NCBI GenBank assembly: GCA_965644495.1
Contig: CBFFSA010000071.1
Span: 1 to 27,333, forward strand
DNA length: 27,333 nucleotides
Origin: Perkinsela sp. CCAP 1560/9
Lineage: Eukaryota; Protista; Euglenozoa: Kinetoplastea
Direction: 5' to 3'
The number at the start of each line of letters is the position of its first letter. The stretch's first letter is position 1. The notes below the pieces were generated by a model. That model was not told the DNA's origin and searched no databases. It worked only from the letters and a program-made list of their open reading frames with translations. Position numbers and translations under genes: made by a program. Of the stretch, positions 3,264 through 27,333 are shown one piece after another.

Positions 3264-6200
3264 TTATCTTCGATAAGGACCACCACCAAAATGTTGTTGT
3301 TGTTGTTGTTGGTATTGTGGGCGTGGGAGAAGTTGATGTTGTGAGGCTGCAGGGCCCATTGGTGTTGGTTGTTGCCACGGAGTCCCAGGAACATTTGGTA
3401 AGATCCCACCACCACCTGAAGGGAAAGCTGGTGGAGGTTGTGTCATTTGTTGTTGGAATTGGGCTTTAGCTTGTGCGACAGATCCGACCACTCTTTGTGG
3501 TTGCTGTGGAGAAAAAAAAAGAAGAATTTCATCAGAAAGGTATGATTGACGATTAATTTTTTTTTGGTGGGGGAAGGAGAGCCAGGAGGGGTTTTCCGAT
3601 TAGACAAAAAATCAAAAAGTCAAAACCTGAAAATTAGTTGCTGGTTGTTGAAATTGCGTTTGTTGTTGATGTTGAATTTGTTGTTGTTGCTGCTGTTGCT
3701 GAATTTGTTGTTGTTGATACAAAACTTGTTGCTGTTGTTGAAGTAATTGCTGTTTTAATTGCTGAGCTTTCATCTGTTCTTGACGAAGTTGTTGTTCTTT
3801 GCTCATCAATTGTTGTTCCTGCAATCGCCTCTGTCTTTCTTGTTCTTTCTGCCGAACATCAACCCCTCCTCCCATTCCTCCTCCTCTTCCACCAAAAGAA
3901 CCAGCTCGCCGATTCCGATCTCGATCTCGACCACCACCACCACCACCACCGCCAAGACGAGGAACCCATCTTCTTTGATCACGATTGTCTCGATTACGGT
4001 CTCGATCTCTGTAACGATCTCGATCCCGATCCCGATCTCTGTCTCCTCGATCACCACGAAAATCTCGATCGCGAAAATCTCGATCATTCCTTCGATGGTC
4101 GTTTCTTCGATCATTCCTTCGATCATCATCATCCCTTCGACGCTCAATGGAAGCAAAGTTGGACAGAGAATAGTAAGTCTGAGATGATGTAAAAGTAGAG
4201 GAATCTAAAGAAAGAAAATACAAAAAAGTTGTTTTTTTTAGTTCAATCATCGTAAATTTCCTATGTGCAACAAAAAAAAAAAGGCAAAACAAAATAAACC
4301 TGGAATTATAGCGATCACTCGGTCAGTGACCTCTAAGGCATTGGTCAGTTTCTGGACTTGTTCTGTGGCAGCAGCGACAGCAATTTTATGCTTCCCAATA
4401 AACTCTAAAAAAGAAAATCAGAAAAATCCTCTCGTCACACCAACCACCCACACCAGCTCCAAAAAAAAAAAAAATTCACACAAAAATAAAACAATTGACA
4501 GATTAAAAAAAAATGAAATAAAAAAAGGGAGGAGGGTTGATCGAAATGTGGGACCGAGAGGGATGTTTTTCACAATGAAAATCACGAAAGAAAGAAATGA
4601 GAAATCAGCAAAAATTCAAATATCTTGACAAAAAGGCCCCCTCATCCCAACAGAAAAAAAATATTTTTTTTAAAAAAAAAACAAAAAAAGCCTGACCTTC
4701 AATCTCAGAAAATTGCATAATATTTGCAGAAGTGACCATTTTCTCTTTCAAATCCTTTTCAAAACGAGCACATTTGTCTTTTAACTGATCTTTCACAACT
4801 ACCAATAACTCTTTCAGAGGCTTCAATTTCAAAGAAGAATACTTCTTCGTTGGAAGCGTCATTCTTTCCTCATAAGCTTCACACAAACCTCTTTCCATAT
4901 CAAAAAACTCTCTCATCTTACGAATATAATCAAACTGACTTTCAGCGTTCTTCAACGCAAGATGATAATTCTTAATTCTACGCTCCACTAAACTCATATT
5001 TTTCTTATACAAAGACTCAAATTCTTTCAAATCATCTAAACTCTCAAACTCAGGATAAAGATCATATAAAAAATCTTCTTGGGGAATCAGAAGTTTTGCA
5101 GCTTGTCGACAAAATGATCCATGAATCCACTTCCGATACTCAGAGGATTCAACTTCTTCCAAAGTTCGTCTCAAAAACTTACAAATAGCAGAAATCTTAC
5201 TTTCATATCTTCGGAGAACATGATAAAATCCTTCAATAGAATCACGCGCATTTGCACGAGCTCGTTGTAGTTCTTCTTCTTCAGTACTCTTCTTAGATTT
5301 TTCTTTCTCACCATCATCACTACTCTTACTACTTCCCCCTTCCCCCTCGCTACTCTCTTTCTTTTCTTCGATTTTTTTTTTCTCTTCTTCATTTTTGAAG
5401 GCAATTAAAGCCTCTTCTGCTTCGGTAAGCAGGGGGACCAAATGATCTAAAATATTGCAGAATGAACTCCAATCAGTTTCTGTTTTTTCTTCTTTCTCCT
5501 CTTTCCCATCTTTCTCATCTTTCTCTTTTTTCTTAATCATCTTCTCCTTTTCAAATCCCAAGCATTCGTCAATGAGGTTTGGGAGAGTAGTTTCAGCCAC
5601 AGAAGATGAATGTTTTTTCTCAGAACCAGAACAACACTTAGAAATTACATTCCCTAACACAGACACACTGATCGAAAAAAATAAAAAAAAAAAAAAAAAA
5701 AAAAAAAAAATAAAAAATAAAAAAATAAAAAAAATAAAAAAAAAAAACAATAAGCAATGAAACACATATTGACAAAAAAAAACCACACCACACTCCACCA
5801 TATTTAAAACAAAAAAGTCGTCAGGAGAACGTTGAAAACTTTTCCAACAAAAACACCACACACCCACCACACCCAAAATAAGAGATAAAATCGATAGATT
5901 TATAAAGAACAATTTTTCACAATAAATAAAAATAATACATAGATACTGAAAGACAGAAAAAGAAAAGAGAGAAAAAGGCGATTTAAAAAAAAAAAAAAAA
6001 ACCTCCAAAGCAAAGAAGGAGCAAATTGGCTCAGCAGAAATGAATTTGGATTCTGAAGGAGTTCTTTAAAAAGATCCGTCGATTTTTCTCCTTTCTCAAG
6101 AAGATCCATGACATCATCGACATTCCACTTGACCGCTAAATCAACCAATTTGTCTTCTTTCTATTTTTTGAAGAGACTTGAGAGGGAGAAGGAAAATCCA

Positions 6201-8301: not shown

Positions 8302-10969
8302 TCACATGTAATACGGGTTCTGAGGAGGGGCAAGACGATCTCGACGAGGACCTCCACCACCACTACCACCACCACGTGAAGAGTTTGGATTCCATTCATG
8401 AGGTGATGTCGGGCTCCCTTTCATGTTCTTTTCTCCCTTGTTTGGATATCTCTTCTTGGGACCTTTTCCTCCTTCCATCCCACTACCTCTTCCTTCTCCT
8501 CCACCTCTTCTTCCTCCTCGGTTGCTGGAGGCACCTTTTCGATGGTCATAAGAGTCTTGGTTACGACCTGCAAAATAAAAAAGAATTTATTCAGGGTGAG
8601 TTAAAGAGTAGGTTTGTTTGTTGATTAAAAATCATGGTGTATTGGGAAAAAAAAAAGAAAAAGAAAAAATAAAAATAAAGATAAAAATAAAAAACCTTGT
8701 TGTGAGTGACCTCCTCCTCCACGACCTCCTCGTGAAGAACCACCACCACCACCACCATAATCATTTTTCGCTCCTCCACCATACCAACCATCCATCAATC
8801 CAGTTCCTCCACCTTCACCACCACCACCAGACACTCCACCTCCTCCCTCACCCCCACTATTATCCAACCTCCTTCCATGACTCCCGCCCCTCTGATGTTT
8901 CTTCTTCATTCCTTTAACATCAGATTCTGCTTTCTTTTTCACTTCAACCTCTTCCTCTCTTTCTGGAGACTCGACATAAGCTGGGTGACGTTCGTCAGAA
9001 TTCCCAATCCAACCAATTTCTTTCATAAAAGACGTTGCAGAAGCTCTACTTTCCTCCTCACATTTTAACAGTTGATCAACAAATTCACCCAAATCATCAG
9101 GAGCAACATCTTCCTCCTCAAGATCCCCTCCATCTGCTGGAGGGGCACAGCTACTTTTCTTCTCCCCTTTCTCTTCTCCTTCCTCTTCAGAAAGTGCAAA
9201 CTGAAGTTGCCCCTCATCTCGCATCTTCTTCTTGACCTTATTCCTTCTCCTATTAAAGTTCGAAAGCTTGTAGATTTCGTTCATTGAACGGGGGATTCTC
9301 TTCTGAAGAACAAGATCTTCTGATGTTGGACTTAAATTTAGAGCAGCAAGGTTACAGTACTCTTCATCAGCTTCTTTTTGAATCACATCTTTCAATGTGA
9401 CATTGGGACCTCGAAACAGAGACGCTCCGAATTCCGGAATTTTCGCAATTTTTTCAACATCCTCCTTTTTTTGTGTGTTGGTTTAAAAGAAAAGAAAAAG
9501 AAAAAAGAAGAGAAAAGAAAAAAAGAAAAGAAAAGAAATTACTTCATCACTCGAATTTTGAGGTGAATTCGGAGGTGACTCTGTCAATTTTTGACGAAGA
9601 ACAAAAGGAGACACTGTAGAAGGAGTCATAGAGAGAGGAGTTGTCCCACTATTCGCTTCTGGGGTAATCCAACCAGCTGTTGAATACAACTGATCTGTTG
9701 AAAGAACAGGGCTTAGGATATTTAAAATTTGTGATTCTACAGTTCTCTGTCCTTCCTTCGCTTCTGTAGATGGGAAAGATGGCTCAGAATGAGTCAGGGG
9801 AGCATCACCTTCTCTTCCTCCTCGAACTGGAATTGATGGGAGAATCACCATATTCTGTGGATCCGTAAAAAAAATGGGAATAAGAAAAAGATCTTCATTC
9901 TCAAAGAAGAAAAAGAAGGAAAGGTAAACATGTTCTTTCTTATAAATTGCATGAGCAACCCAATCAGAACGATCTAACACTGCTGAAAAAAGGGTATTTC
10001 TCCCTTTTGCTTTTGAAATAAGATCAGCAGACATGGCCTCAAAGATTGGCAGAAAATATCGCCCTTCCTGACGGGAATTGATCAGTCTATTACATTACAA
10101 AGGAGTAGAAACGGGGGGAAAAAAACAAAAGAAACCTTTCTTGCATCATCAACTAAGACTTTCGTTGCAGGACCTCGACGAGCTAAAGTTGAGGAAGAGG
10201 TTACATTTAAATAATATTTAAACAAGTAACCAAGCGAGTTCAGTGGGAATTCCAGCACCTGAGAAGCCTCAGCTAAAAAACAAAAATAAAATGTGAATCA
10301 AACAGCATAACCCCCTTCTCTCTTTTTCATAAATTTGAAAAGGGTTTGAAAAAATGTGAACCTAGATCAAAGATTTGGTTTGCATATAGCCCGTAAGATA
10401 AAAGAGATTCGATTTCCAAGTCACATCGATGAAGAACTTTGATGATTTCTCGATTGGCGAAAGAAGAATTCAACACACTCGCAAATGGTTTCAAATCGGC
10501 TGAGAGAACGTAGTCCCCTGAACGTGTTGTCAAATAAAGAAAGTCTGGTTGGGTGATGATCCCAAATTCTTTTTCTTTACACAACGCTCTTTCAAGACCA
10601 TAAAGATCTTCCACTTCTTGGACCCTAAAATAAAAATGAGTTGGAAAGAGAAAAAAATAAAACAAACGATTGAAAAAAAAAAAGAAAAAGAAAAAGAAAA
10701 AAAAATTCTCGAAACCAGCAAAAACCACCCCCACCAATCCCCGAAGAAGAAGAAACCGACTGAGGATTCAAACTCCGAGTAACAACCTCTCCTCTTGTAG
10801 GATCACCTCTTGCCGAAGAAGAAGAAGAAGAAGAAGAAAGCCTTCCTCTTCCACTCCTACTCCCTCTCGAAAGATCCGATGGATTTCCTCTTCCTCCATT
10901 CCGTGTACCACTCCCACCACTCCCAACCCCTCTTCCTTTATTACTACTGTGGGTTGACCAATCTCCCAT
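8302..10969 (-). CDS. Rrp6/EXOSC10-like (RNase D family) protein with a degenerate DEDDy active site and Gly/Arg-rich termini, 7 exons
   Basis: Exons 10969-10761, 10624-10362, 10272-10136, 10067-9930, 9854-9543, 9464-8696, 8567-8302. Spliced product contains IIKVLHRCDLEIESLLSYGLYANQIFDLAEASQVLEFPLNSLGYLFKYYLNV and ARKEGRYFLPIFEAM...AVLDRS, collinear with the Rrp6 exonuclease domain. Confidence 0.75.
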
Positions 10970-11468: not shown

Positions 11469-14132
11469 TTATTTGATGGAAAAGTCACGAACTTCATTCA
11501 AAATAGTATTGGCTTTTCTCAAAACTTCCAAAATTTGCTTGCATTGAGCTCTTCGCTGAGCAACGACCGGAGATTCTTCCAACAAAGTATCAAAAAAGTC
11601 TTCCCGATACAAAGACCCAACCAACTCATTTTGCATACTGTCCTTTGAGTTATTCACCAAAAAGTGCATAATTGTCTTTGGGGTCAAATCCTTGATGTTC
11701 TTCCTTACGATACCAAAATATGAGACCAACAATGTCTGGATCAATTCGCATTCAAATTTATCTTTGTCGGTTTGCGACCTCCCGGGAGTAATCTGAGCAG
11801 GAACAGGAGCCAACTTATCAACAGAACGTGATTGGTGACCACGACCTTGCTGAGATGGAGGAGGGCCTCCGCTTGGGGCCCCTCCACCCTCTCCTTTACC
11901 AAAGAAGACATTAAAGAATGAACCTCCCCCAGCACCATTCTGTTGAGGAGGCGGTCCACCTTGTGGACCTGCAGGAGGGCCATTTGGATTTGGTGCTCTT
12001 CGTCCTGGTCCTCCTGGTCCTCCAGGCCCACCAGGCCCACCAGGCCCTCCTGGTCCAGGGGCGGGTCCTCCAGGCCCAGGAGGAGCTGGTCTATTTCGTT
12101 GTGGTTGTTGAACGGGCTGTGGATGTTGTGGTTGTTGTTGAACAGGTTGTGGTTGTTGGGGACCACCAGGTCCATCACCTCCACCCTGATGAGCTTGAGC
12201 CATTTGTTCGAAGATTCGATAAAAAGCTCCGCCACCTCCAACAAAGTCAGGGTGATTGGTATTGATATAAGACATCTCAACACAGATCAAATTGCTGACC
12301 ATTTTCTTTGTTGGGATTCGGCATTTACGAAGAAGTTCGTTCGATACATCAATGACTTGCTCTCGCATTTTGGAAAAACGCATCATCTCAGGATTTTCAA
12401 GTTGATTAACGGTTCGTTGAAGTTCATCAAATACAAGATCAACGCATTGTAATGAAGGTTCTTCCAATCGCATGATCTGTCTCTTAACAAGCAACTCAAA
12501 CGCAGCCTCAGGAACAAACAAGGCAGCCTTTGGACCTGTGGCATTACGGATAGCAGTTCGAATGTCATTGTGGGTAAGCCCTTCCAACGGATTGATTCGA
12601 TTTAAACATTCACCAAAGATATCATTAAAAATGAAGTTAATTCGAGCACCACCAAACAACTCGTGGACAGTCAAATTCCCAGATGTCCCCTCAATCGTCT
12701 TTTTGTAATCTGTAGAGAATTTCGTGATAACATCCAACAAAAGACCCCCTCGACTCGCAGCACCATCAAGAGCTGAATCACCATAAGACATTAGCTCTGA
12801 TTGAGTTTCTGTCAACATCTTGTTCACTTTGACTTTTAACTCTGGCAAACAATCCCGGATATGATTCATCAAAACCTTATTGAGTGTCTTTGTTAAATAT
12901 TCAGTTCCACAACGAGATGCGATTTGTCGATAAAGAACATGCTTTTGAAAATATTTCGTTTCATTCTTCAGGGCATCACGAATTGGAGTACCAGATTTAA
13001 TGTCGTGTTGACTTCGGAGGACCACTCCCACAAAACCCAACCTCAAAGGGACAACTCGCCCAAGCAACAGATCCATTGCATCAGTTCCCTTTTTGAAATA
13101 AATAAATATTTTTAAATTCCAAAACTTCTCAATAAAATTCAATTCTAACTCTATTTAACCCACTCTCACCCAACCCAACCCAACCCCAAAACCCAAAAAG
13201 GACCTTTTCTTTCTCATTCACTCCACCTTTTTTGTCAAAAAAAAAACACATACCTTATCCATAATATCTAATTTAGTAATAACTCCCAAAGTTCGAGCGC
13301 CATCTGGATCAACTTCCTTGGCCAATCGAAGAGCATCAGAAGTTGCGATATCAGAGTTTCCGGGACTTACAGCTAAAATGACAGCGTTCCTTTAATAAGA
13401 ATAAAAGTTAATCCCTTTCTCTCGGAATATTATATTCTTTGAAGAAAAAATAACAAAAAAAAAGAGTATTCTTCAAATAAGGAAAGAAGAAACAAAAAGA
13501 AAAATACCTTTTGGTGATATACTCCATCAACATAGCGCGGATTTGCATTTCAATATCCGGTGGTTGGTCACCAACAGGAACACGAGTCATACCAGGAAGA
13601 TCGACAAGAGTCAAGTTGAGGACATGGGGAGAAGAAATTTTCAAATTGATTGGTACACGTGAAATTCCTTTTCCTTTTCCTACCACACGAGATGTCTCGT
13701 TCTCGATTTCCTCCCTAATTTTATTGAAATCTGTGAAAATCTGTTTTTGGAATGAGAAAAAGGAAATGAAGGGGAAAAAAAAAAGCAAAAAAAAGCTCTC
13801 TTCGCTTTCTCTTCTCTTTCTCTTTCTTGCTTGAACAAAAACCGATAAAAAGAAGAAGGAGAGATCCAAACCGTGTTTGGTTTATGCAAAAACTCGCCAA
13901 TCTCATTCGGTTCAGTCGGTGTATTCACCAATTGCAAAACAAGAGGACGACGAGTAACAATCCCAGAACCTCGAGGAAGAAAATCCCTTCCAACAATATG
14001 TTCTAACACACTACTCTTTCCACTTGATTGTGCTCCAATGACAACGATTTGGGGAAGATCGATTGGATCAAACCCGCCTACTGATGTGAAGGCGTCTTGG
14101 AGGCGGTTGATCACTGGAATCAGAGTCTCCAT
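11469..14132 (-). CDS. dymA: Dynamin-related GTPase of the Drp1/Dnm1/DymA type (749 aa, 4 exons)
   Basis: Exons 14132-13872, 13740-13508, 13389-13254, 13088-11469. G1 GAQSSGKS, G2 IVTRRP, G3 DLPG, G4 TKLD; middle domain ELFGGARI and YINTNHPDF; [27 protein letters not shown]. No PH domain; Gly/Pro/Gln-rich variable insert. Symbol reflects similarity to Dictyostelium DymA, not proven orthology. Confidence 0.95.
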
Positions 14133-14402
14133 TTTTTTCGGAAAGGTTGGAACGAAATTTGAATTTGAGAAGAGAAACAAAGAAGAAAAGGAAAGGAAAG
14201 AAGTTGAGAAGAACTGAAAGAGAGAGGAAGTTCAACAAATCTGTTTTTTTTGGAGAAACAAAACAAAACGCTCTCCTTTTCAATACGGGAAAATCCTGTG
14301 GTGCCTATGTGGCACTCCATTCTGAGGTTAAAAAGGACTTTTTGTTCATTTTGCGTTTCGGGATGTTGTTTCTGATTTCTGGTTTTCTCCAATTTGAAGA
14401 AA

Positions 14403-15329
14403 ATGGAAAAGGGTAAAGGGAAAAGAAAAAGAACTGCCAACAACAAATATTTTGGGGGTGATTGGGAACCACTTGAGTTCATTGGACCAAAAAAGCGATT
14501 GCGAAAGAACGACGACGATGAAAAGAACGACGACGAAAAGAACGACGACGATGAAAAGAGCGAAAAGAAAAGCCAACAACACAAAAAAAAGACGAACAAG
14601 ACAACAGCGTCAGCGAGAACGACAAACAAGAAGAGGAAATCCCCTTCCATCAACCAAGAACAACAAAAAAAGAAAAAACAGGTGAAGGAAGTGGGAGGAG
14701 ATGGGGTGGTGATGATACAAGAGGGTGGTGGCCAGCAGCAGCAGCAAGGTGGGAGGGGGTTAAAAGAAGTCGTTGAAACAACAACAAGAAGAGAAGATCC
14801 CATTGTGTGTTGTCATTTTGTGGATGCATCTACAACTCAGACTGCTGCTGGATTGCCACAATCTTCAACAATTCACATTTCGTTGTCTTGGTTTGTTAAC
14901 TTCTGTGTTGTTTCGAAATTTGAGGAAAGGTTAAGGTGGTCATGGAAGAATAAGAGACGTGCAATCACAGGGAGTTTTCCTCTGCCTTCTGAGGTGTTTG
15001 ACTTCTTTTTTCAATCTATTGGGACTTCTTTTGAGAATGAGAAAAGAATCAAGAAAATAATTACAAAGGTGGAAGACCTTGAAAAATTGGATCAGAAGTT
15101 TGGATCTTCAACTCGATGGCGCAAATGTGATTTTCCTTTGGAAAATGGAGTGGAAGATGGGAAGAATGCGATTGTTCTTCAATATCTTCAGCCTTGTGGT
15201 ATGTGTTGGCCACCAATTATGATGAAGGCAGAATCCCCACTTGAAATTTTCTATGACAAGAAGACATTGTCCATGAAGTTTTCTGCGTCAGTACAAGGAA
15301 CAAACTCAACTGATGCTGTTCGTTACTGA
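14403..15329 (+). CDS. Hypothetical 308-aa protein: basic/low-complexity N-terminus with NLS-like motifs and a globular C-terminal ~175 aa
   Basis: Uninterrupted ORF with ATG at 14403; KGKRKR and PKKRLRK motifs; normal-complexity C-terminal half; followed by an A-rich 3' region. Confidence 0.65.
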   Translation: MEKGKGKRKRTANNKYFGGDWEPLEFIGPKKRLRKNDDDEKNDDEKNDDDEKSEKKSQQHKKKTNKTTASARTTNKKRKSPSINQEQQKKKKQVKEVGGDGVVMIQEGGGQQQQQGGRGLKEVVETTTRREDPIVCCHFVDASTTQTAAGLPQSSTIHISLSWFVNFCVVSKFEERLRWSWKNKRRAITGSFPLPSEVFDFFFQSIGTSFENEKRIKKIITKVEDLEKLDQKFGSSTRWRKCDFPLENGVEDGKNAIVLQYLQPCGMCWPPIMMKAESPLEIFYDKKTLSMKFSASVQGTNSTDAVRY

Positions 15330-15606
15330 GCCAGAATGCTGCTGTGTGGGGGGGTGGGTGGGTGAGAGGGAGAAAAGAAAGAGGTTTTTGAGATCAAATA
15401 AATAAAAAAATGAGAATATTGAAGAGTTAAAAATAAAAAATTGTCTTGTCTTCAAAAAAAAAGAAAGAAATATTTTTAATATTTAAAAAAGAAAAAGAAA
15501 AAAGAAAAAAGAAAAAGAAAAAGAAAAAAGAAATAAAGGGGGTAAAAAGAAATAAGAAAAAAAAAGAAATTTTGGAAGAAACACTTTTATTTTAAAAAAA
15601 TTGATC

Positions 15607-16767
15607 TTAATCAAGATTCATCCTCTGCCCATCAGAAAAAATCTCTTCTTTTTTTAATCCTTTAGCTTTCAAGAAGGGGTGTTGGAGAAGAAAAATCCCA
15701 ATCCATCTGTTTTCTGGGTTTCCTTCATAATCCCGAATTCCATGCTCAACCAATCTTGAGTCAAGCAAAATCGCATCCCCAACCTTCCATTTGAATGCAG
15801 CATCCAACCCCCCCAACTCCAAGGCCCCTTTTTTCCCTTCTTCCACTTGGATCGGAAACAAAAAGGAAAGGTAATCATTTGGATCTCGGTGAAATTTGGA
15901 TGAACCTTGACCACACATAAAAAGATGGAAAGAACCAAAAGGAAAGTCGTCAAGTTGATCAGTCAGTTGGGCAATTTTTGGTCGATACTTTTTCACACAA
16001 CCAGAAGCAATGTTGGCAATCGGAGCCAATTCAGCATGCAAAAGATTTCGGCTTTCTTCATTTTTCCCCACCTTCCCAGCATGATATATTTTGGGTTTAC
16101 CTTGTTCAGTCCAAAAACCAGACTCAACAAATTGTTTTCTTCCAGAGTCACTTCGCCGAGAATCCCTTTTGGTCTCCCACCAGCTGCTATTCTGCTGTAG
16201 AACATGCGCAAGAGGTTCAATCAAATCTTTCGGAATTAGTTTTGTGAGAAGTTGTGCAATTGGTGTGCAAAGTGAGCGAAGAGGAGGGGAAGGTACCGAT
16301 GACAATGAGGAGGAGGAGGAGGAAGATGAACATGAGGATGAGGAGGAGGAAGAAGAAGAAGAAGAAGAGGCAGAGGAGGAAGAGGATGGAGTTTGTGATG
16401 GTGTTGGAGAAGATAGAGGAAGGGGATCACCTCCTTTCTTTCTTTTCTTTTTTGGGGGAGAGCTTCCTTGACAACAAGAAGAAGAAGAAGAAGAAGGGGA
16501 AGGAGGCTTGATTCCAACAAATACAATTGTGTTTTTGCTGTAGATTTTGACTGGTGATGACTTTGGGCCAAACGGAGTGTTAAGAGCAAAAACATTTTGT
16601 GGTGGATCAGGGACCCACAATTTGTGGATTTGTTTTTTTTTTGCAGGGTTCTTTTGAGATCGTTTTCGTTTTTGATTTCGCTTTTGATTTCGAATTCGAT
16701 TTCGATTTCGTTTGTTTGCCAGAGAATCACAGGGAAAAACAGGAGCTTTACTCATATCATCATCCAT
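15607..16767 (-). CDS. TET/JBP-like 2-oxoglutarate/Fe(II) dioxygenase; a possible extra 5' exon at 17291-17178
   Basis: HxD in SKFHRDPND (H 15889-15891, D 15883-15885), GALELGG, VGDAILLDSR, distal H in VEHGI (15742-15744), 2OG-binding R in ENRWIGIF (15706-15708). Basic NLS-like and Ser-rich N-terminus. The 2OG-Fe(II) fold is well supported; TET/JBP subfamily assignment is from motif style. Confidence 0.78.
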   Translation of the reverse strand: MDDDMSKAPVFPCDSLANKRNRNRIRNQKRNQKRKRSQKNPAKKKQIHKLWVPDPPQNVFALNTPFGPKSSPVKIYSKNTIVFVGIKPPSPSSSSSSCCQGSSPPKKKRKKGGDPLPLSSPTPSQTPSSSSSASSSSSSSSSSSSCSSSSSSSSLSSVPSPPLRSLCTPIAQLLTKLIPKDLIEPLAHVLQQNSSWWETKRDSRRSDSGRKQFVESGFWTEQGKPKIYHAGKVGKNEESRNLLHAELAPIANIASGCVKKYRPKIAQLTDQLDDFPFGSFHLFMCGQGSSKFHRDPNDYLSFLFPIQVEEGKKGALELGGLDAAFKWKVGDAILLDSRLVEHGIRDYEGNPENRWIGIFLLQHPFLKAKGLKKEEIFSDGQRMNLD

Positions 16768-16786
16768 CTTTATCAATTGTTATCTT

Positions 16787-17176
16787 GAAAAAGAGAAGAA
16801 AAGAAATGAGAAGAAAAAAGAAAAAAGAAAAAAAAGAAAAAAGAAAAAGAAAAGAAAAAAAAAAAAAAGAAAAGAAAAAAAAAAAAGAAAAGAAAAAAAA
16901 AAGAGGAACAGAGAAAAGAAAAAGAAAGAAAAAAAAAAGAAAAAAAAGAAAAAAGAAGAGAAAAAGAAGAGAAAGAAAAAGAAGAGAAAAAGAAAAAAGA
17001 TAAAAAAAGAAAAAAAAAGAAAAAAAAAGAAAAAAAAAAGAAAAAAAAAAGAAAAAAGGAAAGAAAAAGAAGAGAAAGAAAAAGAAGAGAAAAAGAAAAA
17101 AGATAAAAAAAGAAAAAAAAAGAAAAAAGGAAAGAAAAAGAAGACAAAGAAAAAGGAAAGAAAAAGAAAAAAAAAA
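16787..17176. repeat. ~390-bp nearly pure A/G low-complexity tract, probably an intron of the dioxygenase gene (minus strand, 17177-16768)
   Basis: Only a handful of pyrimidines on the + strand. On the minus strand it starts GTTTTT at 17177 and can end at AAG|ATG (16768/16767) in phase 0. Confidence 0.8.
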
Positions 17177-17663
17177 CTTTTTTCTTGGCTTTCCATTTTT
17201 TCACTTTCCAAATTATCACAAAAAAGGAGACACTCGGGTCAGTTGAGAGGTTGGGGGGGGGGTGTTGTAGAAGTCGAGGATTACCATTCATTTCCTAGAG
17301 ATGTTTTCCTCCTTCTACGACTCTCCTCCTTCTCTCTCTCTCTCTCTCCTGTTTGTCTTCCAACCAAAAAAAAAAGCTTGTTCAAATAAAGGGTCCCTAT
17401 TTTTTTTTTTTGTTTTCTCCCTTGTCTCTTGTCTCTCTCCAAATATTTTAACTCTCCATTTAATTGGGTTTTCAAAGAGTTCTTTCTAAGTGTGTGGATC
17501 AATTGCCAGAAAAAGGGTTCTGTTTGCCTCTCTTTCTAGGTGTGTGTGTTGTTGAGTTTTTTCTGAGAAGAAGTTTTGAGAAGATTCTTTGTCCCTGCCA
17601 CCCCCCACCTTATTTCCCTCTCTCATTCTTTCATTCAGGTTTAGAAGAAACTAGTTGTGTAGG

Positions 17664-20600
17664 ATGAACATCGACTTTGTTCTTGATGGATCGAAAGGGA
17701 GGATGAAGCGAAAGAAATACAACCCACCAGATCTTTGTGATGATTCCTCGTCCTCCTTTGTTGGAAACAGTGATCTCTCTTCCTCTTCCTCCTCTTTCCT
17801 TCGAGAGGAGCAAGAGACCCTTCTCAAATTTCATTCACACCTGGGGAAAAATCGAACGCAAGAGCCTCCCTCACAGACGTTAACAAATCCAGAACTGAGA
17901 GCCTGTTTTTCCCAATTTGAAGAGAGGATAAAAGGCACAAAACCTCATATTAATCTTTGGTCGCTTGAAGAACTTCTGAAAGTTCAACAAAGGGAAATCC
18001 AGGAGCTGAAAGAGATGCTTCAAGCGAGAGAGGTTCATTGGAGGGATCAAGTGAGTGAGCACACCAAACAATCAGTGCTTATGGGTGCGCTGGCGGAACG
18101 AATCGATTTTCTCCGGTACAAATCAGAGGGAACACGCAAATCGCTCCTTCGGTTACAAAGGAAAGCGAAGAAACACCACTTAGAACGAGATATAAAACAA
18201 ACCCAGAGAGTGAGGAGGATAGAACTCTTCAAAAAGAAGCTGGCAACATTGAGGGACTCCATTTTATTTCTTGAGGACTTTGCGATTGAACTGGAAGTCG
18301 AAAATAAGGATCTCTTAGAAGGAGAGAAGAAAAAACATAAAGTATTTGAGGATGGCTCTCGATGGATGATGAAACTGCTCAAAGCTTTTAGTGTTGGGGC
18401 TCCGGAGAATTCGTTCAATCCAATCCAATTTCTGAAGATGTGGATGTCTCACTTCGTAAATGATTCTCTCCCAGACTTCCAAGCGAAACTATTAAAAGAA
18501 GTGGTTGACCAGAGCCACTTTTCCATCCAAGAGGCGATAAAAATTGATCCAGAGGAAATGGCGACGGTGTTAGATCGAACAGGGATGTCACTTTGTCGTT
18601 ACGAAATTCTGGAGAACAAAGTGAGAGAGATATTGGCGAGAAAAGGATTGGAAGATCTGACCCCCTTACCTTTAATGCATAAGGTGAAAGGAGCGATTCA
18701 ACGGACCCAGAAATTGATCCCCTCTCTCTTTGAGTTCGATGATCCACCTAAGAGAACGAACAGACAAAAGAAGTTGATGGGTATAGCGTGTTGTCGACTT
18801 GCTTCTGTGGTTGAATGGATTTGTTTTGCATTGACTGGGGTCTCCGATATTGGAAAGGCTGCGACATGGAAGGTACATGCCGATGGAAGGAGTTTTTGTA
18901 AAGGGGTTAATCAAGTTGTTCTTTCAGTCCAACCAATTGGCCTTCCCTTGTGGCATTTCAATGAAGGTCAAACAAAAGGAGAGTCAGACCCAGCGAAAAA
19001 CAAGCAGTGGGCCAAAGAGAGCTCTTACCTGGTCTTCCCTTTTTTAATTTTCCAAGGGGGCGAAAAGAAACACACTTTTCAAGAGGCGATTCCAAACCAT
19101 GTGTTTTCTGACATGATTCGCTTAGAACATGATGGCCTCCATTTTATGCCCAGCCAAAGCCCAAACGAAGAGAATATTTATCGGAGGGGAACTCTCCCAG
19201 GTTGCGAAGAGGGCTCAGTGAAGTGGTGCAGTGGAGTTTTGTTTGAATTATCTTCTCCGCTCCCAGAATGGAGTCCTCCCACTCGTCATTGGAACAAAAC
19301 AGCATCAACCTCAACAATGGATGTGGTGGGGGAGGAAGGTCAAAGTGGAGAGGGGGCAAAGGGAAAGCCTGAAGACATTGTGAATGAGAAAAGTCTTCTT
19401 TGGAAATCAATTGGAGGGGATGTGGAAGAATGTGATGATGATGATGCTGACAATGATGGGAATGATGATGAGATGAGTCAACAACAATCTTGGGAAGGAA
19501 AAGAAGAAGAATTGCGAAAAGATCCATTATCAACCACTCTGGAATCCCTCTCAAGATTAACTCGAAATCTGATACCATTTGGTGCGGTGGATGCAATGGG
19601 AGTTCAGTTATTTTGGGACCCATCTACTGGCTGGAGAATTGTTCCAATTGAAGAGAACCCTTTTCAGTGGAATCATAACCATCACCCCCCCTCTTCCTCG
19701 CTTGAACATTCTTCAATCAGTCATCAGGAGGAGAGCTCCCCTTCTCGAGAATCCATTGGGAGGAGGGATGATCCTTTTTTCCCCTTTCCTCCTTCTAGTG
19801 GTTCTGTTTCCCCTGAATCACCACCACAATCACCACTGATCTCTTTTTCTCAGTCCCCTCTTCTCAATGACCAAACCTCACAAAATTTATCAGCACCATT
19901 TGTTGATTTGTCTCGTCCCCCAATGGGTTATTCTCCATCATTATCATTCCCATCACAACAATCCCTATTCTTGCCACATTCACAACCCCATTCTCAAAAA
20001 AATTCTCTTTCCCCAATTCTTTCTTTTGAAAATCTCTTTCTTTCACCAGAAGAATTTCCATTTGATTTCTCCTTGTCTGATGGTTTCATTTTGCAAAATG
20101 ATGATGATGATGATGTTGGTGATTCCTTCATATCATCTATGCAAGATGTTGGTGGTTTATCATCAATGCGAGATCACGATGCGATATCATTTTTGAAAGA
20201 ATCTCCTGCTGCTGCTTTGTTGGAACCAACAGTACAAAGAGTTGATACAACAAAGAAGCAGCTGCCCTCTCTTCCTTTTGTCCACCATTGTGTCTTTATT
20301 ATGTGCGGGGACCTGGCAAGCATTTGGGCCTTGTTTGGTTTTTGTTCTGGGATCTTTGATCAACAACATTGCCCTTATTGTACTATTGCAAGAGTGGACC
20401 AATGGCTTGGATCATCATCTGGGCCAGATCCAGTCTCTCGAAGGAAATGGTCTCAAGACACTCCACTCCCTGTTTCTCCAAGCCGATTTGTGATGTGCCT
20501 CCTTCACTGTACGTTGAGAATTGGAGATTTTGCAATTGAGAATTTGTTGAGCGATTGTCTGAATGAACAATACCTTGGTTTGCCCAAATCTCAGAGACCT

Positions 20601-21175
20601 GTTTTTCATGGAAAGAAAGGAAAAGCCAATTCTTCTCCGCAGTATTTTTTGGTGGATCGAAGTCTCAATGGGTTAAAAAAGAAGGAATTGAGGGAGAAAA
20701 TTTGCTCTCACCTGAAGCAAAAAGTAGGAAGGCAGGAATGGAGGAAAGCATTTAAAAATATTTCTATCTCTGTTCAACTGGAAGGATTGGGAATGGATGA
20801 GAAAGAGGAAAAGGGAAAGAAAAAGAGAAAAAGAAAAGCAGTTGTTGGTGGTTTTTGCCCAAGCGTTGCTACTGTACCTCAACTCACAGTCATTGCCAAC
20901 AAGCTATCAGTGAGTAAATTTACTGATGAAATAGGAGCTGATGCAGCCAAGGAAGTTGAGAGATTAACAGCTGCCAGCTTTAAAAGTGTAAACGATGAGG
21001 CAAAGAGGAAGTTTGGAAAAGGAGGTGGGAAGAAGATTCAGCTTACATGGAGACTTTTTTCTGCTTGGTATTATGAACGAAAGGAAGAAAGAGATGATGG
21101 GAAAGCAGAACAAGAAGTTTGTGGCCAAGATGGTGGTGAAGGCAGCTCAATGGGTGAGGATGATGATGATGATGT

Positions 21176-21216
<41 letters not shown>

Positions 21217-22277
21217 GTGATGATGGTGATGATGATGATTGCTTATCTTCTCTTCCTGAATCAAGCTTTGAGACAGAAAGGGCGGAAGAGGAGAGTCCCT
21301 CAATCCTTCTTGCATCTGGGCAGGATGACACAACTTCTCCTCTATTAGAAGATATGTTGATGGCTGATGATTTGATTGAAACTGATGAAAGATTGACAAC
21401 TCAATCAATGCTTAAATTGGCCAAAGTTTTTGCGGATCTTCACCTTCCTTTGCGATTTTTTGTTGAAACTGATGGAGAGCTGCAAGTTGGGCGGTACTCT
21501 GGCAAAGAGATGAAGAAAATCTTTCAAAATGCGAATGAAATATTTTCTTGCAATCCCAATGCTGCAAAGAAACACAATGGCCTTTCTCCTGCAAGATTAT
21601 GGTCACAGTTTTATGATATTTTTTCTCTAATATCTTCTGATCCTCCGAAAGGAAAAACTCGAAGAGAGGTCGCTGCTGATTTTACAACTCGCTTTCAAGT
21701 TTGGAAGAGTTCATTTCTTGGGGATGGGGGGTTTTGTCGAAAAGAATGGCGAATTTATTTTCACATCTTGGAAATGCATGTTGGGGAAGTCTATGAAAAA
21801 TTTGGGAATTTGAAGACCTGGGGCAATGAGGCAGGTGAGCATCTGCATGCACTAGATCGGATCTATTTTTTTCAGAGAAAGCGATATGGCTTAAATGCCC
21901 TAAATCATGCAGTTCTCACAAATGCCTATCAACTCCGAATGGGTCATTCTTCAATGGGGAATTACCAAATTCCTCAGCAAATTCCTGAGCGTGTTAAAAA
22001 TGTTCAACCAAAGCTTTCTCGTGTTTGTGAAATTCCTGCACTATTTACACCATCAACATCATCAACGCTATCTTCATCTTCTTTGCTCTCAACATCATCA
22101 TCTTCATCTTCTTTGCTCTCAACATCATCTTCATCTTCTTTGCTCTTGACATCATCTTCATCTCCTTTTCTCCCATCACATTTCTCCTGTGAGAATTGTG
22201 GAAAAGGGCAATATTATGATCAATGTTGTCACATTGATTTATGTGAACAATGTCTCCGAGATCATCAATGTAATTGA
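17664..22277 (+). CDS. RAG1/Transib-superfamily DDE transposase-like protein, 1537 aa, with N-terminal coiled coil, large low-complexity inserts and C-terminal Cys/His finger
   Basis: WKVHADGR (D407, nt 18882), MCGDL (D883, nt 20310), CPYC (nt 20370-20381), CLLHCTLRIG (H948), RYSGKEMKKI, and YFHILEMHVGEVYEKFGNLKTWGNEAGE (E1392, nt 21837). The last block aligns without gaps to RAG1 [28 protein letters not shown]. Confidence 0.88.
21159..21239 (+). repeat. (GAT)n microsatellite encoding a poly-Asp tract inside the transposase
   Basis: 27 consecutive GAT/GTT/GGT triplets, in frame. Confidence 0.95.
22071..22163 (+). repeat. Coding minisatellite, about 3.3 copies of a 27-30-bp unit (tcttcatcttctttgctctcaacatca[tca])
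   Basis: Direct tandem copies encoding SSSSLLSTS repeats just before the C-terminal Cys/His cluster. Confidence 0.9.
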
Positions 22278-22664
22278 GAAACTTTCGAAATCAAATCAGT
22301 TCATCTTCTTCACTTTTGATTGAACTTGCCATTATTGTCGATATTACTCCGTAATTTGTTTTTGGTTTTTGTTTTTTGGTTTTTGTTTTGTTTTTTGTTT
22401 TGTTGTCATTTTTGAAAATAAACTTCTTCATTTTTTCGCATTCCCCTTGACTTTTTTTACACACCCTTGAAAACTCTCCCAAATCATCTTTCAACACAGT
22501 GAAAAGTTGTCAGAACTGAAATATCAATTTTGCAAGTTTTTAATGATGAAATCAATTGTTTTTTTCTCTTTCAGACCTCTCACAATCCCTGAAAGATATC
22601 TACAACTCTCAGATTTGAAAAAAAAAAACCAGATTCCTTGTTAGGGGGAACAACTCATCGGCAA

Positions 22665-23932
22665 ATGTCCAACAACCGAAAAAACTACTGCAGCATCCAA
22701 TTTCGTTCAAATTTTAGAATCAATTTTATTGATTCCAGTTCTTTTAAAATCCCAAATTTTAGTTCCAACAGACACTTTCCAAATGAGATTGAAGTTTCAC
22801 AAAAAAAAAAAAATTGGTTCTCAAAAAGAAAAAAAAGGGAAAAAAGAATATTTCCAAATAAAGACTCGAAGGATCCTTCCAGTCCAAACAAAGGTTTCGA
22901 CATCAGCACCAGCGTTTTCGCTGATATTGAAAAAGAGGTTGAAAGGATCAGAGAGGGTTTGCCACCAATGTAACCAACCAAGAAGCACAAATGAGGTGCT
23001 TTTGTCACACTGTCTTGGAGATTTTCTTTTCTCTTTCCACTGATGTTTCTCGAAAATCCCGGTCGACCACAAAAACCTTGACTCTCTCATGGACACAGCA
23101 CTCTTCCCACTCACATCGAACTGAGGAACGACGTCGATCTCAACTTCTGAAAGCAATTGAATTTCTGTACCATACTCACCAAAGAAATTTAATTGGGTTC
23201 ACTCACCCCTGAGAATGCAAAACTGATTGTGCAATCCCAATCCTTCAAGGATTGCACACCAACCCTCATTTTCGAGAGGGAATTCAGTCGATAATTCAAC
23301 TTGATCTGAGTCGTTGGGAAGTGGATGAAGGGCCCGAGGTTGGGTGGTTGATCACACAAAGATGAGCAAGTATTTTTTTATCTTCTTTTTATCTCAAATT
23401 TGCGAATCACTCAGAGGTTGCTGCGATTTCAGTGCAAAACAGCAAACCATTCATCCCACCGAAACAATTGGGCTCTATCAGATCCGGCTCCGATGTAAAT
23501 ACTCTGAAAAGTATCTGTGGTTCCCAGTTTGAAAACTGATGAGAGTGTTCCTCATGGATTTCGGTCTCTATGTGATATCTTCTTCATAACCGAGTTTCTT
23601 TGTATCTGACAGTCCCTCTCTTCAAAGATGATTGGATTTAGCTTCATCGGTGGCACAACTTGAGTGGGGATAAGTATATTCTTGTTAGTATTTTTGTTGA
23701 TGGAGCCCCCAAACAAATGAGGAGGGATGACCAACATTATGGCAAGAGTTCTGAATTTTCGAGGCTGTGCTCTCCAAGACATGAGTTAAGACATGTCTTG
23801 GGTTGGGGGAACTGATCTTGGTGAAAAATCAGAACAAATCCGAACAGTTTTCATGATTTTGATAAAGAAATTGAAAAATTGCAGGAGGACTCTGAGCTTC
23901 AACTTTCGCTATTTCTTTATTCCAAATGGTGA
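22665..23932 (+). pseudogene. Decayed ubiquitin-specific protease (peptidase C19)-like gene
   Basis: USP-like segments occur in the expected order across stops and frameshifts: IGFTHP*ECKTDCAIPILQGLHTNPHFREGI (Cys-box-like), KYFFIFFLSQICESL, IGLYQIRLRCKY, KYILVSIFV...QHY (His-box-like), LSLFLYSKW*. Divergent, so the assignment is tentative. Confidence 0.4.
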
Positions 23933-24541
23933 TCTCTCCATGCTTTTCTTTATTTGGGATCTCTGGTGGTGGGACTTATTATTCAATCCATTGGGCATTA
24001 TTTTGTTTGTTCATAATCTTTTAGGTTTCTCTTCATTTATTTTTTCAACAGCATAACCTTTGTCATGCAAATAAAGCAATTCTCAAGCAATTCAAGAAAA
24101 AACACTCTATCATATTCACTTTGAGAAAAATACTCGGAATTGGCGGCTTTGAATGGAAGGGGGACAATCAAATGAATTCTTGAGATCATGGAAATCAATA
24201 TTGTTCCTTCCTGTTTTGATTTCATTTTAGCATGATGAGGAGATTCCAATTCCTTTTACGACTTAAAGTTGGTGCCCTTGGATTTGCTTGCATCTGTTTA
24301 AGGATCATGTCACAATACTGGGACCAGCTGTTCAATCACAAAATCGAGAAGGGGAAGGTAATTCCAATGACAGAAGAGGAGATTCTTCAGGGACTCCAGC
24401 GTTTCTGCTGAAAGAGAGACTTTTTCTGGGTAAAAACTGTGGCTGATTTGAATATCTTTATTTGGCAGTGACGGTTCATATTTTGGAGGACAACTTTTTT
24501 CTAAAATCCGCTTTCAACTCCAATCCGCTCCCTCAAAAAAT

Positions 24542-24600
24542 TCCAAACAATCTCCAAACAATCTCCAAACAAAACAAAAGAACAAAACAAAAGAACAAAA
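24542..24600. repeat. Short tandem repeats (tccaaacaatc)x~2.7 and (aacaaaagaacaa)x~2
   Basis: Directly visible tandem duplications. Confidence 0.7.
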
Positions 24601-24672
24601 TCTGAAACAGCCAGCACACTTCAGCTCGCTTTGTTTGAAATACAAAAAAAAAATAGTCCCACACGATTTTGT

Positions 24673-27333
24673 TTATTGCAAAGGTAGGAATTTCTTCGAA
24701 CTCATCAAAAAATCGTGAACTTCTTGCCCAGTGTCTTTCCCTTCCTTAATTGCCCACACAACCAGAGACTGCCCACGTCTACAATCACCAGCAACAAACA
24801 CATTTCCAGTCGCATGATACTTATATTCACTCGTCTGGCTTGTCGTCAGTTTTCCTTGAGAAACTTTCAGGCCAAGAGAGGTTGGTTGTCGATCATCAGG
24901 ATCAATCTCCACCCCCGCATATCCAATCGCAAGCAGCGCCAAATCACACTTCCAAATTTTTGTTGAGTTTGGGATTTCCTTCCAGGACAACCCAGCTCGA
25001 GTGTAAACCCCTGGCTTCCGGGTCCATTCAACTTCAACTGTCTCAATACCCACCAGGTCCCCCTTCTCATTTTTCACAAAAGATTTTGTAAAAATGCAAT
25101 ACTTTCGAGGATCAGAACCTTGATGATGTGCCGCTTCCTCGTGCCCATATTCAACTCGAAAAACGCTTGGCCATGCTGGCCACTCATTCCCTTTCCCTCT
25201 TGTGAGTGGCGGTTTGAACATCAGAGAAAAGTTAGTCACACTTGCACAACCCTGTCTTACAGAAGTTGCAATACAATCACATCCTGTATCCCCTGCACCA
25301 ATAACTATGACGTTTTTTCCTTTTGCATTGAAGCGAGCGCGGGAACATGAACACGAGCAGTATTTATCGTCACTTTCGTTGAAGCAATCACACCGATCTC
25401 CTCGAACATTTGCATCAAGGACAGCTTGGGCAGAATGCAAAAAAGACATTGCATATTGTACCTGTGGTGCGTCAGAACCCGGAATTGGAAGTTCTCGAGG
25501 TTTCGTGGCTCCTGTTGCTACAATCACAGCGGAATATTTGCTTTTCATTGACTCCAATCCAAAAGCATCAATTTCAGAGTTCACAATAAATTTAACTCCC
25601 ATTTGCCTCAAAATATCAAGGCGTCTTTCAACAATCATTTTATCAAGTTTCACATTTGGGATCCCAAACCTCAACAACCCACCAATCGCTTCAGCTCTCT
25701 CGAAGACTGTAACTTGATGGCCATACGAAGCGAGCTTTTGAGCTGCTGCTAAACCCGCAGGACCTGAACCAATAATTGCCAAAGTAAAAGATGTGGGGGG
25801 AGGTTTCTGAGGTTGGACCCATCCACTCTTAAAAGCTCTCTCAATAATACTATTTTCAATATTCTTAATCGTAACTGCCTGATCAACAATAGAAAGGACA
25901 CACGCTCCTTCACAAGGAGCAGGACAAACCCGCCCAGTGAACTCAGGAAATGGGTTCGTTTCAGAAAGACGTTCATAGGCCAGTTTCCATTGATCGCTGT
26001 GAACGAGAGAGTTCCATTCCGGGATTTTATTATCAACTGGACAACCATACTCTGAGTGACAAGTTGGAATCCCACAATCCATACAACGGGCAGCCTGAGC
26101 AAATCTTTTGTTATCTGTCTCATGGGGAACCCAAATTTCTTCCCAGTCTTTCACCCTCTTTTTAACAGAGCGATACTTCTCTGCATTTCGAGAAATCTTC
26201 ATAAACCCTTTGAGTTTGTTCTCCACCAGACCAGGAGTAACACCTAAATCTTCGATGTCACCAATTTCTGGAGAGGCCTGCTTTTTGTAGATCGTTGAAA
26301 GAAACTCGCCCTCCAATTCAGCATTGCTGGATTCCTCTTGTTCTTTCTTGTTCTGTTCCTCATTTTTGTGGCCTTGTTCCTCTTTGAGTTTTGCAATTTG
26401 AATAGCGTATTGAGTTGGGACAACACGTACAATTTTTTTGTGTTCCTCAGTGTCACTCAAGATCCTCTTGGCTGTAACACTTCCTGTTGTCTGTGCATAC
26501 TCGCTCAACAAACTCCAAAAATCTTGATCGAAATCGTCGCAGTTTCCTGAAGGTTTCACATATTTACAACACTTGAATGCTGGATTTGACAAAAGTGACT
26601 CCATCAAAGAGTCGGATGGTTGATAGATCCAAACAACACCCCCACTCATCCCAGCACCAAAATTTCGACCAACTCTTCCCAAGATGATAATTTTTCCCCC
26701 AGTCATATATTCTAGGAGAAAAAATTAATGGAGAAGGAAAAAAAAAATCAACATAAAAAAAATCAAACCACAAGCATGATCTCCAACACCTTCACAGATT
26801 GCATGTGCACCACTGTTCCTAACAGCGAATCGATCAGCCACCATCCCGTGAAAAAAAGCCTTTCCCTCAATTGCACCATACAAGACAACATTACCAGCAA
26901 TTACATTCTTTTCTGGGAGATACCCTTCACGCGACCGAGGAGGAGCGATAATCACCTTCCCACCTGACAACCCCTTTGCCACAAAGTCATTTGCATCTCC
27001 TCGTAATTCAACAGTGACACCACGAATAAGCCATGCAGCAAATGACTGTCCCGCTGATCCAGTAAAAAGGAAAGTAACTTGTGGGAAGTGTGCAGGAAAG
27101 CCGTCATCTCCACACAGAGATGCAATCTCAAAACTCAACATTGTTCCAACTGTTCGATCAATACTGCAGATCTTAATTGGACCAAATGTCTGTGACTCCC
27201 CAAAGTCGCCCAAGGGTTTCTGTTGAGAAATGGCTGACAAAAGTGGAGCAACACTTTTCAAGAGTTGTTGGTCCACAACGTCATCTAATCCCCTGGGTCG
27301 GAGCGTCCCCACAAAATGCAAAGGCTGTTCCAC
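24673..27333 (-). CDS. GLT1: NADH-dependent glutamate synthase (fused alpha+beta, eukaryotic type), 3' part; intron 26768-26712
   Basis: GXGXG domain (GSAGQSF, GDANDFVAKGLSGG, RFAVRNSGA, EGVGDHAC|EYMTGG restored by a 57-bp GT-AG intron). Beta domain: QAARCMDCGIPTC, NPFPEFTGRVCPAPCEGAC, GSGPAGLAAA, GAGDTGCDC, AGDCRRGQSLVVWAI. Confidence 0.97.

Follow-up and report, generated by a model that had tools for sequence, protein, structure and literature searches.

We analyzed a 27,333-nucleotide contig (C71) of the Perkinsela sp. CCAP 1560/9 genome assembly, here called the window, in which two intact genes lie head-to-head. One encodes a dioxygenase (DX, 15607-16776, minus strand) that very probably belongs to the TET/JBP superfamily, and the other encodes a transposase (TP, 17655-22277, plus strand) that resembles RAG1 and Transib. 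We favor the explanation, at a probability just short of even (about 0.48), that the pair is an intact, single-copy-looking and probably no longer bounded copy of a cut-and-paste DNA transposon that carries a TET/JBP gene. Both open reading frames (ORFs) are uninterrupted, their catalytic residues are kept, each protein has links to its family, and relatives of DX are found as transposon cargo. We propose, more cautiously, that DX and TP move or have moved together, and we suggest a substrate and a purpose for DX. A wider hypothesis, which we hold tentatively, is that genes of a so far unrecognized TET/JBP clade travel as cargo between DNA transposons of at least four superfamilies outside fungi (RAG1/Transib-like, piggyBac, PIF/Harbinger, and an unclassified element with terminal inverted repeats, TIRs). 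Under this hypothesis, the window would be the first case of a RAG1-family transposase accompanied by an accessory gene that modifies DNA bases.

A divergent gene pair with a common intergenic region

The DX ORF has 389 codons and the TP ORF has 1540; their first ATGs are at 16767 and 17664, respectively. The two genes diverge head-to-head, with about 0.9 kb from ATG to ATG. An open frame of 4.6 kb, the length of TP, cannot arise by chance at 40% GC. An earlier reading of the window (the sequence-only reading) had proposed that an intact dioxygenase and an intact transposase diverge from a common region, and the ORFs and catalytic residues bear this out. It had also allowed for an extra exon at 17291-17178, which would leave a gap of about 370 bp between the genes. 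We found no support for this exon, which falls inside a simple-sequence tract, and hence none for the shorter spacing. The region between the genes is presumed to be a bidirectional promoter region. Its features are as follows.

16777-17663, no strand: shared divergent intergenic region, 30% GC, defined by composition
About 16790-17180: A/G-rich simple tract that fills most of the gap between DX and TP; its matches elsewhere are simple repeats only

DX has a CpG observed/expected ratio of 0.43 and TP one of 0.44, falling to 0.24 in the middle of TP, compared with 0.55-0.86 in the flanking genes; from 15000 to 24000 of the window the ratio is about 0.3-0.5. An excess of TpG and CpA extends from 19 to 24 kb. 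The CpG depletion may reflect past cytosine methylation of the block, with low-complexity coding sequence as an alternative cause.

DX groups with the TET/JBP superfamily

A word-indexed search with DX returned two relatives only, and a phmmer search of the Protein Data Bank (PDB) with the whole protein returned only low-complexity matches. An exhaustive HMMER search with a profile of the four closest sequences (A2) identified 127 representatives, of which 50 had E values below 1e-30. This profile reached proteins that pass the Pfam Tet_JBP (PF12851) cut-off of 34.9 bits: P0076 (E 7.7e-15, with a Tet_JBP score of 45.7 bits), P0088 (E 7.4e-10, 35.1 bits), and P0101 (E 2e-7, 47.2 bits). Closer relatives gave sub-threshold Tet_JBP matches (6.6e-4 for P0015, 1.8e-3 for P0027, and 3.5e-3 for P0030), and 20 of 53 aligned family members matched Tet_JBP. 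When a profile of the 53 sequences (A3) was compared with the PDB, the best match was the Naegleria Tet-like dioxygenase NgTet1 (E 5.5e-8), in an alignment spanning HxD to Arg. An hhalign comparison of the DX family with JBP1 gave an E value of only 8e-4.

The catalytic residues of DX (H296-x-D298, H345, and R357) do not vary across an alignment of nine relatives that includes Pfam Tet_JBP members and JBP1/JBP2 (A8), and the HxD..H..R residues are invariant or nearly so across the 53 family members. In a Foldseek search with a low-confidence DX model, the best row was the fungal TET enzyme CcTet (E 0.77, TMq 0.43, not significant), and NgTET1 was at rank 17. In a quick tree, DX fell in a clade of 39 rows (SH-aLRT 96), apart from the clade of Pfam-recognized members. 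Because intermediates and the family profile link DX to accepted Tet_JBP proteins and to NgTet1, and because the catalytic residues are invariant, we consider it very likely that DX represents a divergent branch of the TET/JBP superfamily. The sequence-only reading had called DX TET/JBP-like and had suggested a direct HMMER comparison with the Tet_JBP profile. That comparison gave no match; the family profile reaches Tet_JBP proteins instead, and the description stands for DX as a divergent relative connected through a transitive profile link.

DX also has a basic N-terminal region. Patches resembling a nuclear localization signal (NLS) recur in the relatives P0001, P0002, P0003, P0007, and P0009, and these recurring basic N-termini fit a nuclear enzyme. 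The features of DX, all on the minus strand, are listed below.

N-terminal ~170 residues: basic, with NLS-like K/R runs and Ser-rich low complexity
15610-16269: predicted catalytic double-stranded beta-helix domain, residues 170-389, from profile and alignment
15874-15894: HxD
15736-15750: distal His
15697-15711: 2-oxoglutarate-binding Arg

Relatives of DX are carried by DNA transposons

The genomic context of its relatives gives the strongest indirect support for DX as cargo. On a JGI metagenome contig (L007, 1-4796), the DX relative P0003 lies with a 1037-aa ORF inside an element of about 4.5 kb that has 29-nt TIRs (3-31 and 4465-4493, 93% complementary). The same element is present on a second contig (L008). 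The two contigs are identical up to the end of the TIR and unrelated beyond it, so this is a mobile element at two insertion sites. The 1037-aa ORF belongs to no family that we recognized; it contains a DDE-like motif of the DGH.. type and, on visual inspection, a GGxVRD..DxD motif like that of nucleotidyltransferases.

Two other relatives follow a transposase gene on the same strand. At L010 1144-3897, P0006 comes after a piggyBac transposase (DDE_Tnp_1_7, E 4.7e-32), and at L027 242-3258, P0030 comes after a PIF/Harbinger transposase (DDE_Tnp_4, E 6.9e-15). No TIRs were visible on these two short metagenome contigs. Counting DX-family loci of at least 3.3 kb, the window included, four of six have a transposase neighbor, and the four transposases are of different kinds. 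The loci without one are L013 and the contig that carries a DX paralogue in this assembly (C76). The quick tree places the C76 paralogue in one subclade with the three relatives linked to transposons.

TP resembles RAG1 and Transib transposases

The putative catalytic and zinc-binding residues of TP follow the order D..D..CxxC..H(4)H..E, which is the order expected of RAG1, Transib, and CMCT transposases (the first Asp is assigned by position). CMCT transposases and RAG1 have a C(2)C / H(3-4)H signature in common (PMC12730594). Since D886, C906/C909, H1370/H1375, and E1395 reproduce this signature, we regard it as highly probable that TP is a DDE transposase of the CMCT clade. The features of TP, all on the plus strand, are as follows.

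18876-18896: putative first catalytic Asp (D410) of the RNase H-like core, from motif position only
20301-20510: second Asp (D886), CxxC (C906, C909), and a conserved His-Cys after it (H951/C952), from sequence
19281-19919: low-complexity insertions between the first and second Asp, residues ~543-628 and 674-755, from a composition scan
21099-21335: acidic run, residues 1149-1227, from a composition scan
21756-21842: H(4)H zinc motif (H1370, H1375) and catalytic Glu (E1395), from the phmmer alignment to RAG1
Residues 1460-1506: Ser-rich linker, from a composition scan
22188-22274: C-terminal Cys/His-rich finger after the Ser-rich linker, from sequence

The insertions at residues ~543-628, 674-755, and 1149-1227 account for the unusual length of TP.

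Within the CMCT clade, TP is likely nearest to RAG1/Transib. By ESM-Atlas features, the nearest neighbors of residues 330-980 were RAG1 pre-RNase H/RNase H/ZnC2 fragments (0.94, 170 shared features), and the nearest named clusters for residues 1230-1480 were RAG1 ZnH2/ZnC2/C (0.90 and 0.88). The two halves of TP therefore match RAG1 sub-domains collinearly. One tnp2/EnSpm cluster was also among the feature neighbors, with a score of 0.90. A phmmer search of the PDB with residues 1340-1430 returned RAG1 in 12 of 14 matches (best E 0.2), and the alignment, which covers RAG1 934-970, pairs H1370 with H937, H1375 with H942, and E1395 with E962. The same search with whole TP gave acidic low-complexity matches only. 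Foldseek with a low-confidence model of the C-terminus placed RAG1 first (E 0.36). RAG1 and BbRAGL were the top rows (E 0.36-2, TMq ~0.25-0.29), and RAG1 and amphioxus RAG-like chains made up about half of the top 50, which we read as rank evidence. These three tests are weak but concordant; none is significant singly. They largely support the earlier description of TP as RAG1/Transib-like.

The H(4)H..E stretch of TP is invariant in five metagenomic relatives at about 50% identity. A homologue search with TP region 1241-1470 found none among proteins of 847-2695 aa; shorter kin fall outside this length band.

The window most likely belongs to a sparsely sampled second organism

The assembly consists of 110 contigs (21 Mb) and contains two small-subunit ribosomal RNA (SSU rRNA) genes, one on a small contig of 38% GC (C58, 32767-34872) and one on a large contig of 50% GC (C11, 510796-512820). 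Because these genes are only about 75% identical across 1266 alignable bases, the assembly must represent two very different eukaryotes. A dynamin-family gene in the window (11469-14135, minus strand; Dynamin_M and GED; GC content at third codon positions 0.34) has at least three short introns in the part that codes for the GTPase domain, so the organism of the window splices conventionally. A dynamin on C11 that is 40% identical to it is a single unbroken frame of 844 codons. C58 has repeats in common with C71 and with C63, another contig that is discussed below. An intact gypsy element on C76 is single-copy across the whole assembly. Most likely, the window belongs to the second organism, which is present as small contigs only. 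The DX and TP copy numbers that can be counted in the assembly are therefore lower bounds, and the presence of each gene twice in so little sequence hints that both belong to multi-copy families. The window also contains a 311-codon ORF (14394-15329, plus strand) that is convergent with DX; it is rich in K, E, and D and matched no family, and nothing indicates that it belongs to the element as a third part.

A Tet_JBP scan of the whole assembly matched only a JBP1 gene (Tet_JBP and DB_JBP1; C1, L020 2358-5033) and a JBP2 gene (Tet_JBP and SNF2; C5, L021 2499-5624), both on large intron-poor contigs. Together they form a kinetoplastid-type base-J toolkit and probably belong to the other, kinetoplastid-like organism of the assembly. 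We found no C5-DNA methyltransferase in the assembly, an absence that probably describes that organism as well. We considered and rejected the idea that the host of DX makes base J and is without a cytosine methyltransferase, since the JBP1 and JBP2 contigs are probably those of the other organism and are uninformative for the organism of the window.

Do DX and TP form one mobile element?

We put the odds that DX and TP constitute one transposon at about even, and several observations count against it. A search for TIRs and target-site duplications (TSDs) between 13000-17700 and 22200-27333 returned only simple sequence or chance matches of 10-12 nt. A repeat search and two scripts found no CA..TG termini with a TSD around the pair. 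The flanks are not repeated in the assembly, save for simple repeats and one 170-bp repeat in common with C58. Linkage of DX and TP was seen at one locus only. The DX paralogue on C76 is unlinked, with no TP-related transposase anywhere on that 26-kb contig, and no dioxygenase of the family lies beside the second TP copy, on C63. In the three metagenomic loci the DX relative is downstream of its partner on the same strand, whereas DX is divergent in the window. In the quick tree, the window DX is separated (97 SH-aLRT) from the transposon-linked relatives and groups in another subclade with P0001, P0004, and P0005, whose short contigs do not reach any neighboring genes. The family assignments are also contested by some results. 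Apart from noise, DX has no Pfam match at E <= 1, Tet_JBP included, and TP likewise matches neither RAG1 nor any other Pfam model at E <= 1. A profile of the 14 closest DX members (A4) reached NgTet1 at E ~1 and gamma-butyrobetaine dioxygenase at E 0.01. Profiles of five TP relatives at about 50% identity (A5 and A7) did not reach RAG1. The AF2 models of DX (4 sequences, pLDDT 55) and of the TP C-terminus (6 sequences, pLDDT 46) were poor. The sequence-only reading had called the pair a candidate transposon system and had proposed co-occurrence at other loci as a check. With no TIRs or TSD, unique flanks, and the C63 and C76 copies unlinked in this assembly, the locus does not establish that claim.

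The other copies tell more about TP than about the pair. The TP copy on C63 (L006, 6431-8374, plus strand) is decayed, with 2 stops and a deleted middle. It is 40% identical to TP at the C-terminus and 23% at the N-terminus, and it adjoins non-LTR retroelements. A 207-aa ORF convergent with this copy (L006, 8560-9183, minus strand) has an HKD..H motif and was tried as a DX relative. It failed the family tests (-0.1 bits in the HMM search, 4% in hhalign), so no second linkage of DX and TP is counted. An ENA metagenome contig (ctg3476l, L011) from the genome of a related organism carries a TP remnant of about 500 bp (8934-9434, 73-96% DNA identity) among fragments of ankyrin, P450, and leucine-rich repeat genes. 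This locus is non-syntenic with the window, and the TP lineage must therefore have moved or duplicated in the past. A tblastx comparison of the window flanks with all fetched loci gave no matches, and metagenome scans with A5 and A2 confirmed no locus.

The DX paralogue on C76 is intact and 33% identical to DX. Its neighbors are class-C GPCR-like genes and a Ty3/gypsy element. Two such GPCR-like genes (7tm_3; C76 11460-14297 and 20010-22379, L022 and L023) are present, the second with a bacterial-type solute-binding domain, and the intact Ty3/gypsy element sits between them.

The lack of TIRs common to DX and TP and of linked copies elsewhere would also be expected if the two genes were chance neighbors. 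A Transib-like transposon or remnant might have landed beside a host dioxygenase gene, or beside the cargo of a vanished transposon, with no joint work between the two. Mobile-element debris, for example the retroelements on sister contigs, is consistent with such an origin, and DX need not belong to TP, as its relatives travel with other transposase types. On the other hand, a transposase neighbor is the rule among the six informative loci of the DX family, and DX and TP are both intact and both CpG-depleted. A TP relative (P0130) and a DX relative from the closest subclade (P0004) also come from a single metagenome sample (3300055726), which is suggestive only. On balance, we consider chance adjacency rather unlikely. 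It is less probable still that the pair has been domesticated, with both genes under host selection (perhaps serving programmed DNA rearrangement or epigenetic control), expressed from a bidirectional promoter, and immobile. Domestication would explain how frames of 1540 and 389 codons have stayed intact with all catalytic residues although TIRs are lacking and the assembly contains no near-identical copy, and the catalytic stretch that does not vary among TP relatives points the same way. However, copy number cannot be judged for an organism represented by small contigs in a two-organism assembly, the decayed copy on C63 and the remnant on L011 are what would be expected of a mobile family, and no orthologous syntenic locus is known.

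A further alternative concerns DX itself, which might act on a protein, a small molecule, or RNA, so that its pairing with TP would be unrelated to base modification. The missing Tet_JBP match of the DX protein and the preference of the A4 profile for gamma-butyrobetaine dioxygenase over NgTet1 are in its favor, and among the 53 family members 7 also touch WelO5 and 5 touch TauD. These matches, however, including that of A4 to gamma-butyrobetaine dioxygenase, span just ~30 residues around the distal His, whereas the matches to Tet_JBP and NgTet1 extend across the core, HxD through Arg. The A2 profile reaches genuine Tet_JBP proteins with E values as low as 7.7e-15, the basic NLS-like N-termini are conserved, and the best Foldseek row, though weak, is a fungal TET. 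We therefore think a non-DNA substrate improbable. The reading that we prefer remains a TET/JBP-carrying transposon that has probably lost its boundaries.

A proposed role for the dioxygenase

If DX and TP do form a transposon, TP would cut and paste by DDE chemistry, using an RNase H-like core and a C2/H2 zinc module placed between the second Asp and the Glu. DX would be a nuclear Fe(II)/2-oxoglutarate dioxygenase carried as cargo, and both genes would be transcribed outward from the common ~0.9-kb region. DX may oxidize a methylpyrimidine, in the DNA of the element or genome-wide, converting 5-methylcytosine (5mC) to 5-hydroxymethylcytosine and beyond, or thymine to 5-hydroxymethyluracil. 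By such oxidation, silencing marks that the host has placed on the element would be removed or rewritten, or their effect relieved. We base this proposed function on fungal elements and on characterized TET/JBP enzymes.

A functional pairing would mean that the capture of TET/JBP genes by DNA transposons reaches beyond fungi and beyond the published superfamilies, to a RAG1/Transib-like transposase and, through the relatives of DX, to piggyBac. Were our wider hypothesis correct, eukaryotic DNA transposons in general, and not only those of fungi, would use base oxidation to counter silencing. Current Pfam models miss the TET/JBP clade that includes DX, and annotations of protist and environmental genomes probably under-record cargo of this kind. 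The DX family consists of small stand-alone enzymes with a testable substrate (5mC, T, or N6-methyladenine), and the pair would offer a natural system for studying how cut-and-paste elements evade silencing by base modification. Nothing known about the origins of RAG is overturned by these results.

Comparison with known transposons and TET/JBP enzymes

TET/JBP genes were reportedly first linked to Kyakuja-Dileera-Zisupton (KDZ) elements by Iyer et al. in 2014. The sequence-only reading knew of no described example of a pairing like the one in the window. TET/JBP cargo has in fact been published for fungal transposons, RAG1-like CMCT lineages among them: fungal hAT, Harbinger, IS3EU, EnSpm, ESTA, Plavaka, Helitron, and KDZ transposons encode TET/JBP dioxygenases (Kojima 2025, PMC12730594). 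In that study, ESTA transposases resemble RAG1 by HHpred, the TET/JBP cargo has switched between transposon superfamilies in fungi, and its proposed role is escape from methylation-based silencing; neither piggyBac nor protists are mentioned (PMC12730594). What is new here is the transposase lineage and the dioxygenase clade, and probably also the host for such a pairing.

The window resembles these fungal transposons in having a DDE transposase gene next to an intact TET/JBP-type dioxygenase gene. Fungal ESTA, EnSpm, and Plavaka belong to the CMCT clade and have the C(2)C and H(3-4)H motifs found in RAG1/Transib and in TP. Just as the fungal cargo passes among unrelated superfamilies, members of the DX family are found with piggyBac, with Harbinger, and in a TIR element. 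The differences are that DX falls in a separate clade to which the Pfam Tet_JBP model gives no direct match, that the Transib/RAG1-like and piggyBac partners are absent from the transposases given in PMC12730594, and that the ends of the window element were not found. In addition, the host of the window is an intron-bearing eukaryote and the DX relatives are environmental.

TP shares with Transib, RAG1, and ProtoRAG the ligand order described above, and RAG1 ranked top in each of the three tests. TP differs from Transib and RAG1 in having no significant Pfam RAG1 match and in its very large low-complexity insertions; typical Transib transposases are half the length of TP. No RAG2-like partner lies beside TP, in contrast to ProtoRAG, and neither CAC-type TIRs nor a 5-bp TSD were found around the pair.

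For DX, the closest counterparts of solved structure are NgTet1 (4LT5, 5CG8) and CcTet (7VPN), which are its best PDB matches by family profile and by fold rank, respectively. Like DX, they are small stand-alone TET/JBP enzymes of microbial eukaryotes with an HxD..H..R core, but DX aligns with them from HxD onward only and at low identity, and the fold match comes from a low-confidence model. JBP1 and JBP2 are members of the same superfamily, and all four catalytic residues align with those of DX. Unlike DX, they are strong Pfam Tet_JBP members and carry an additional DB_JBP1 or SNF2 domain.

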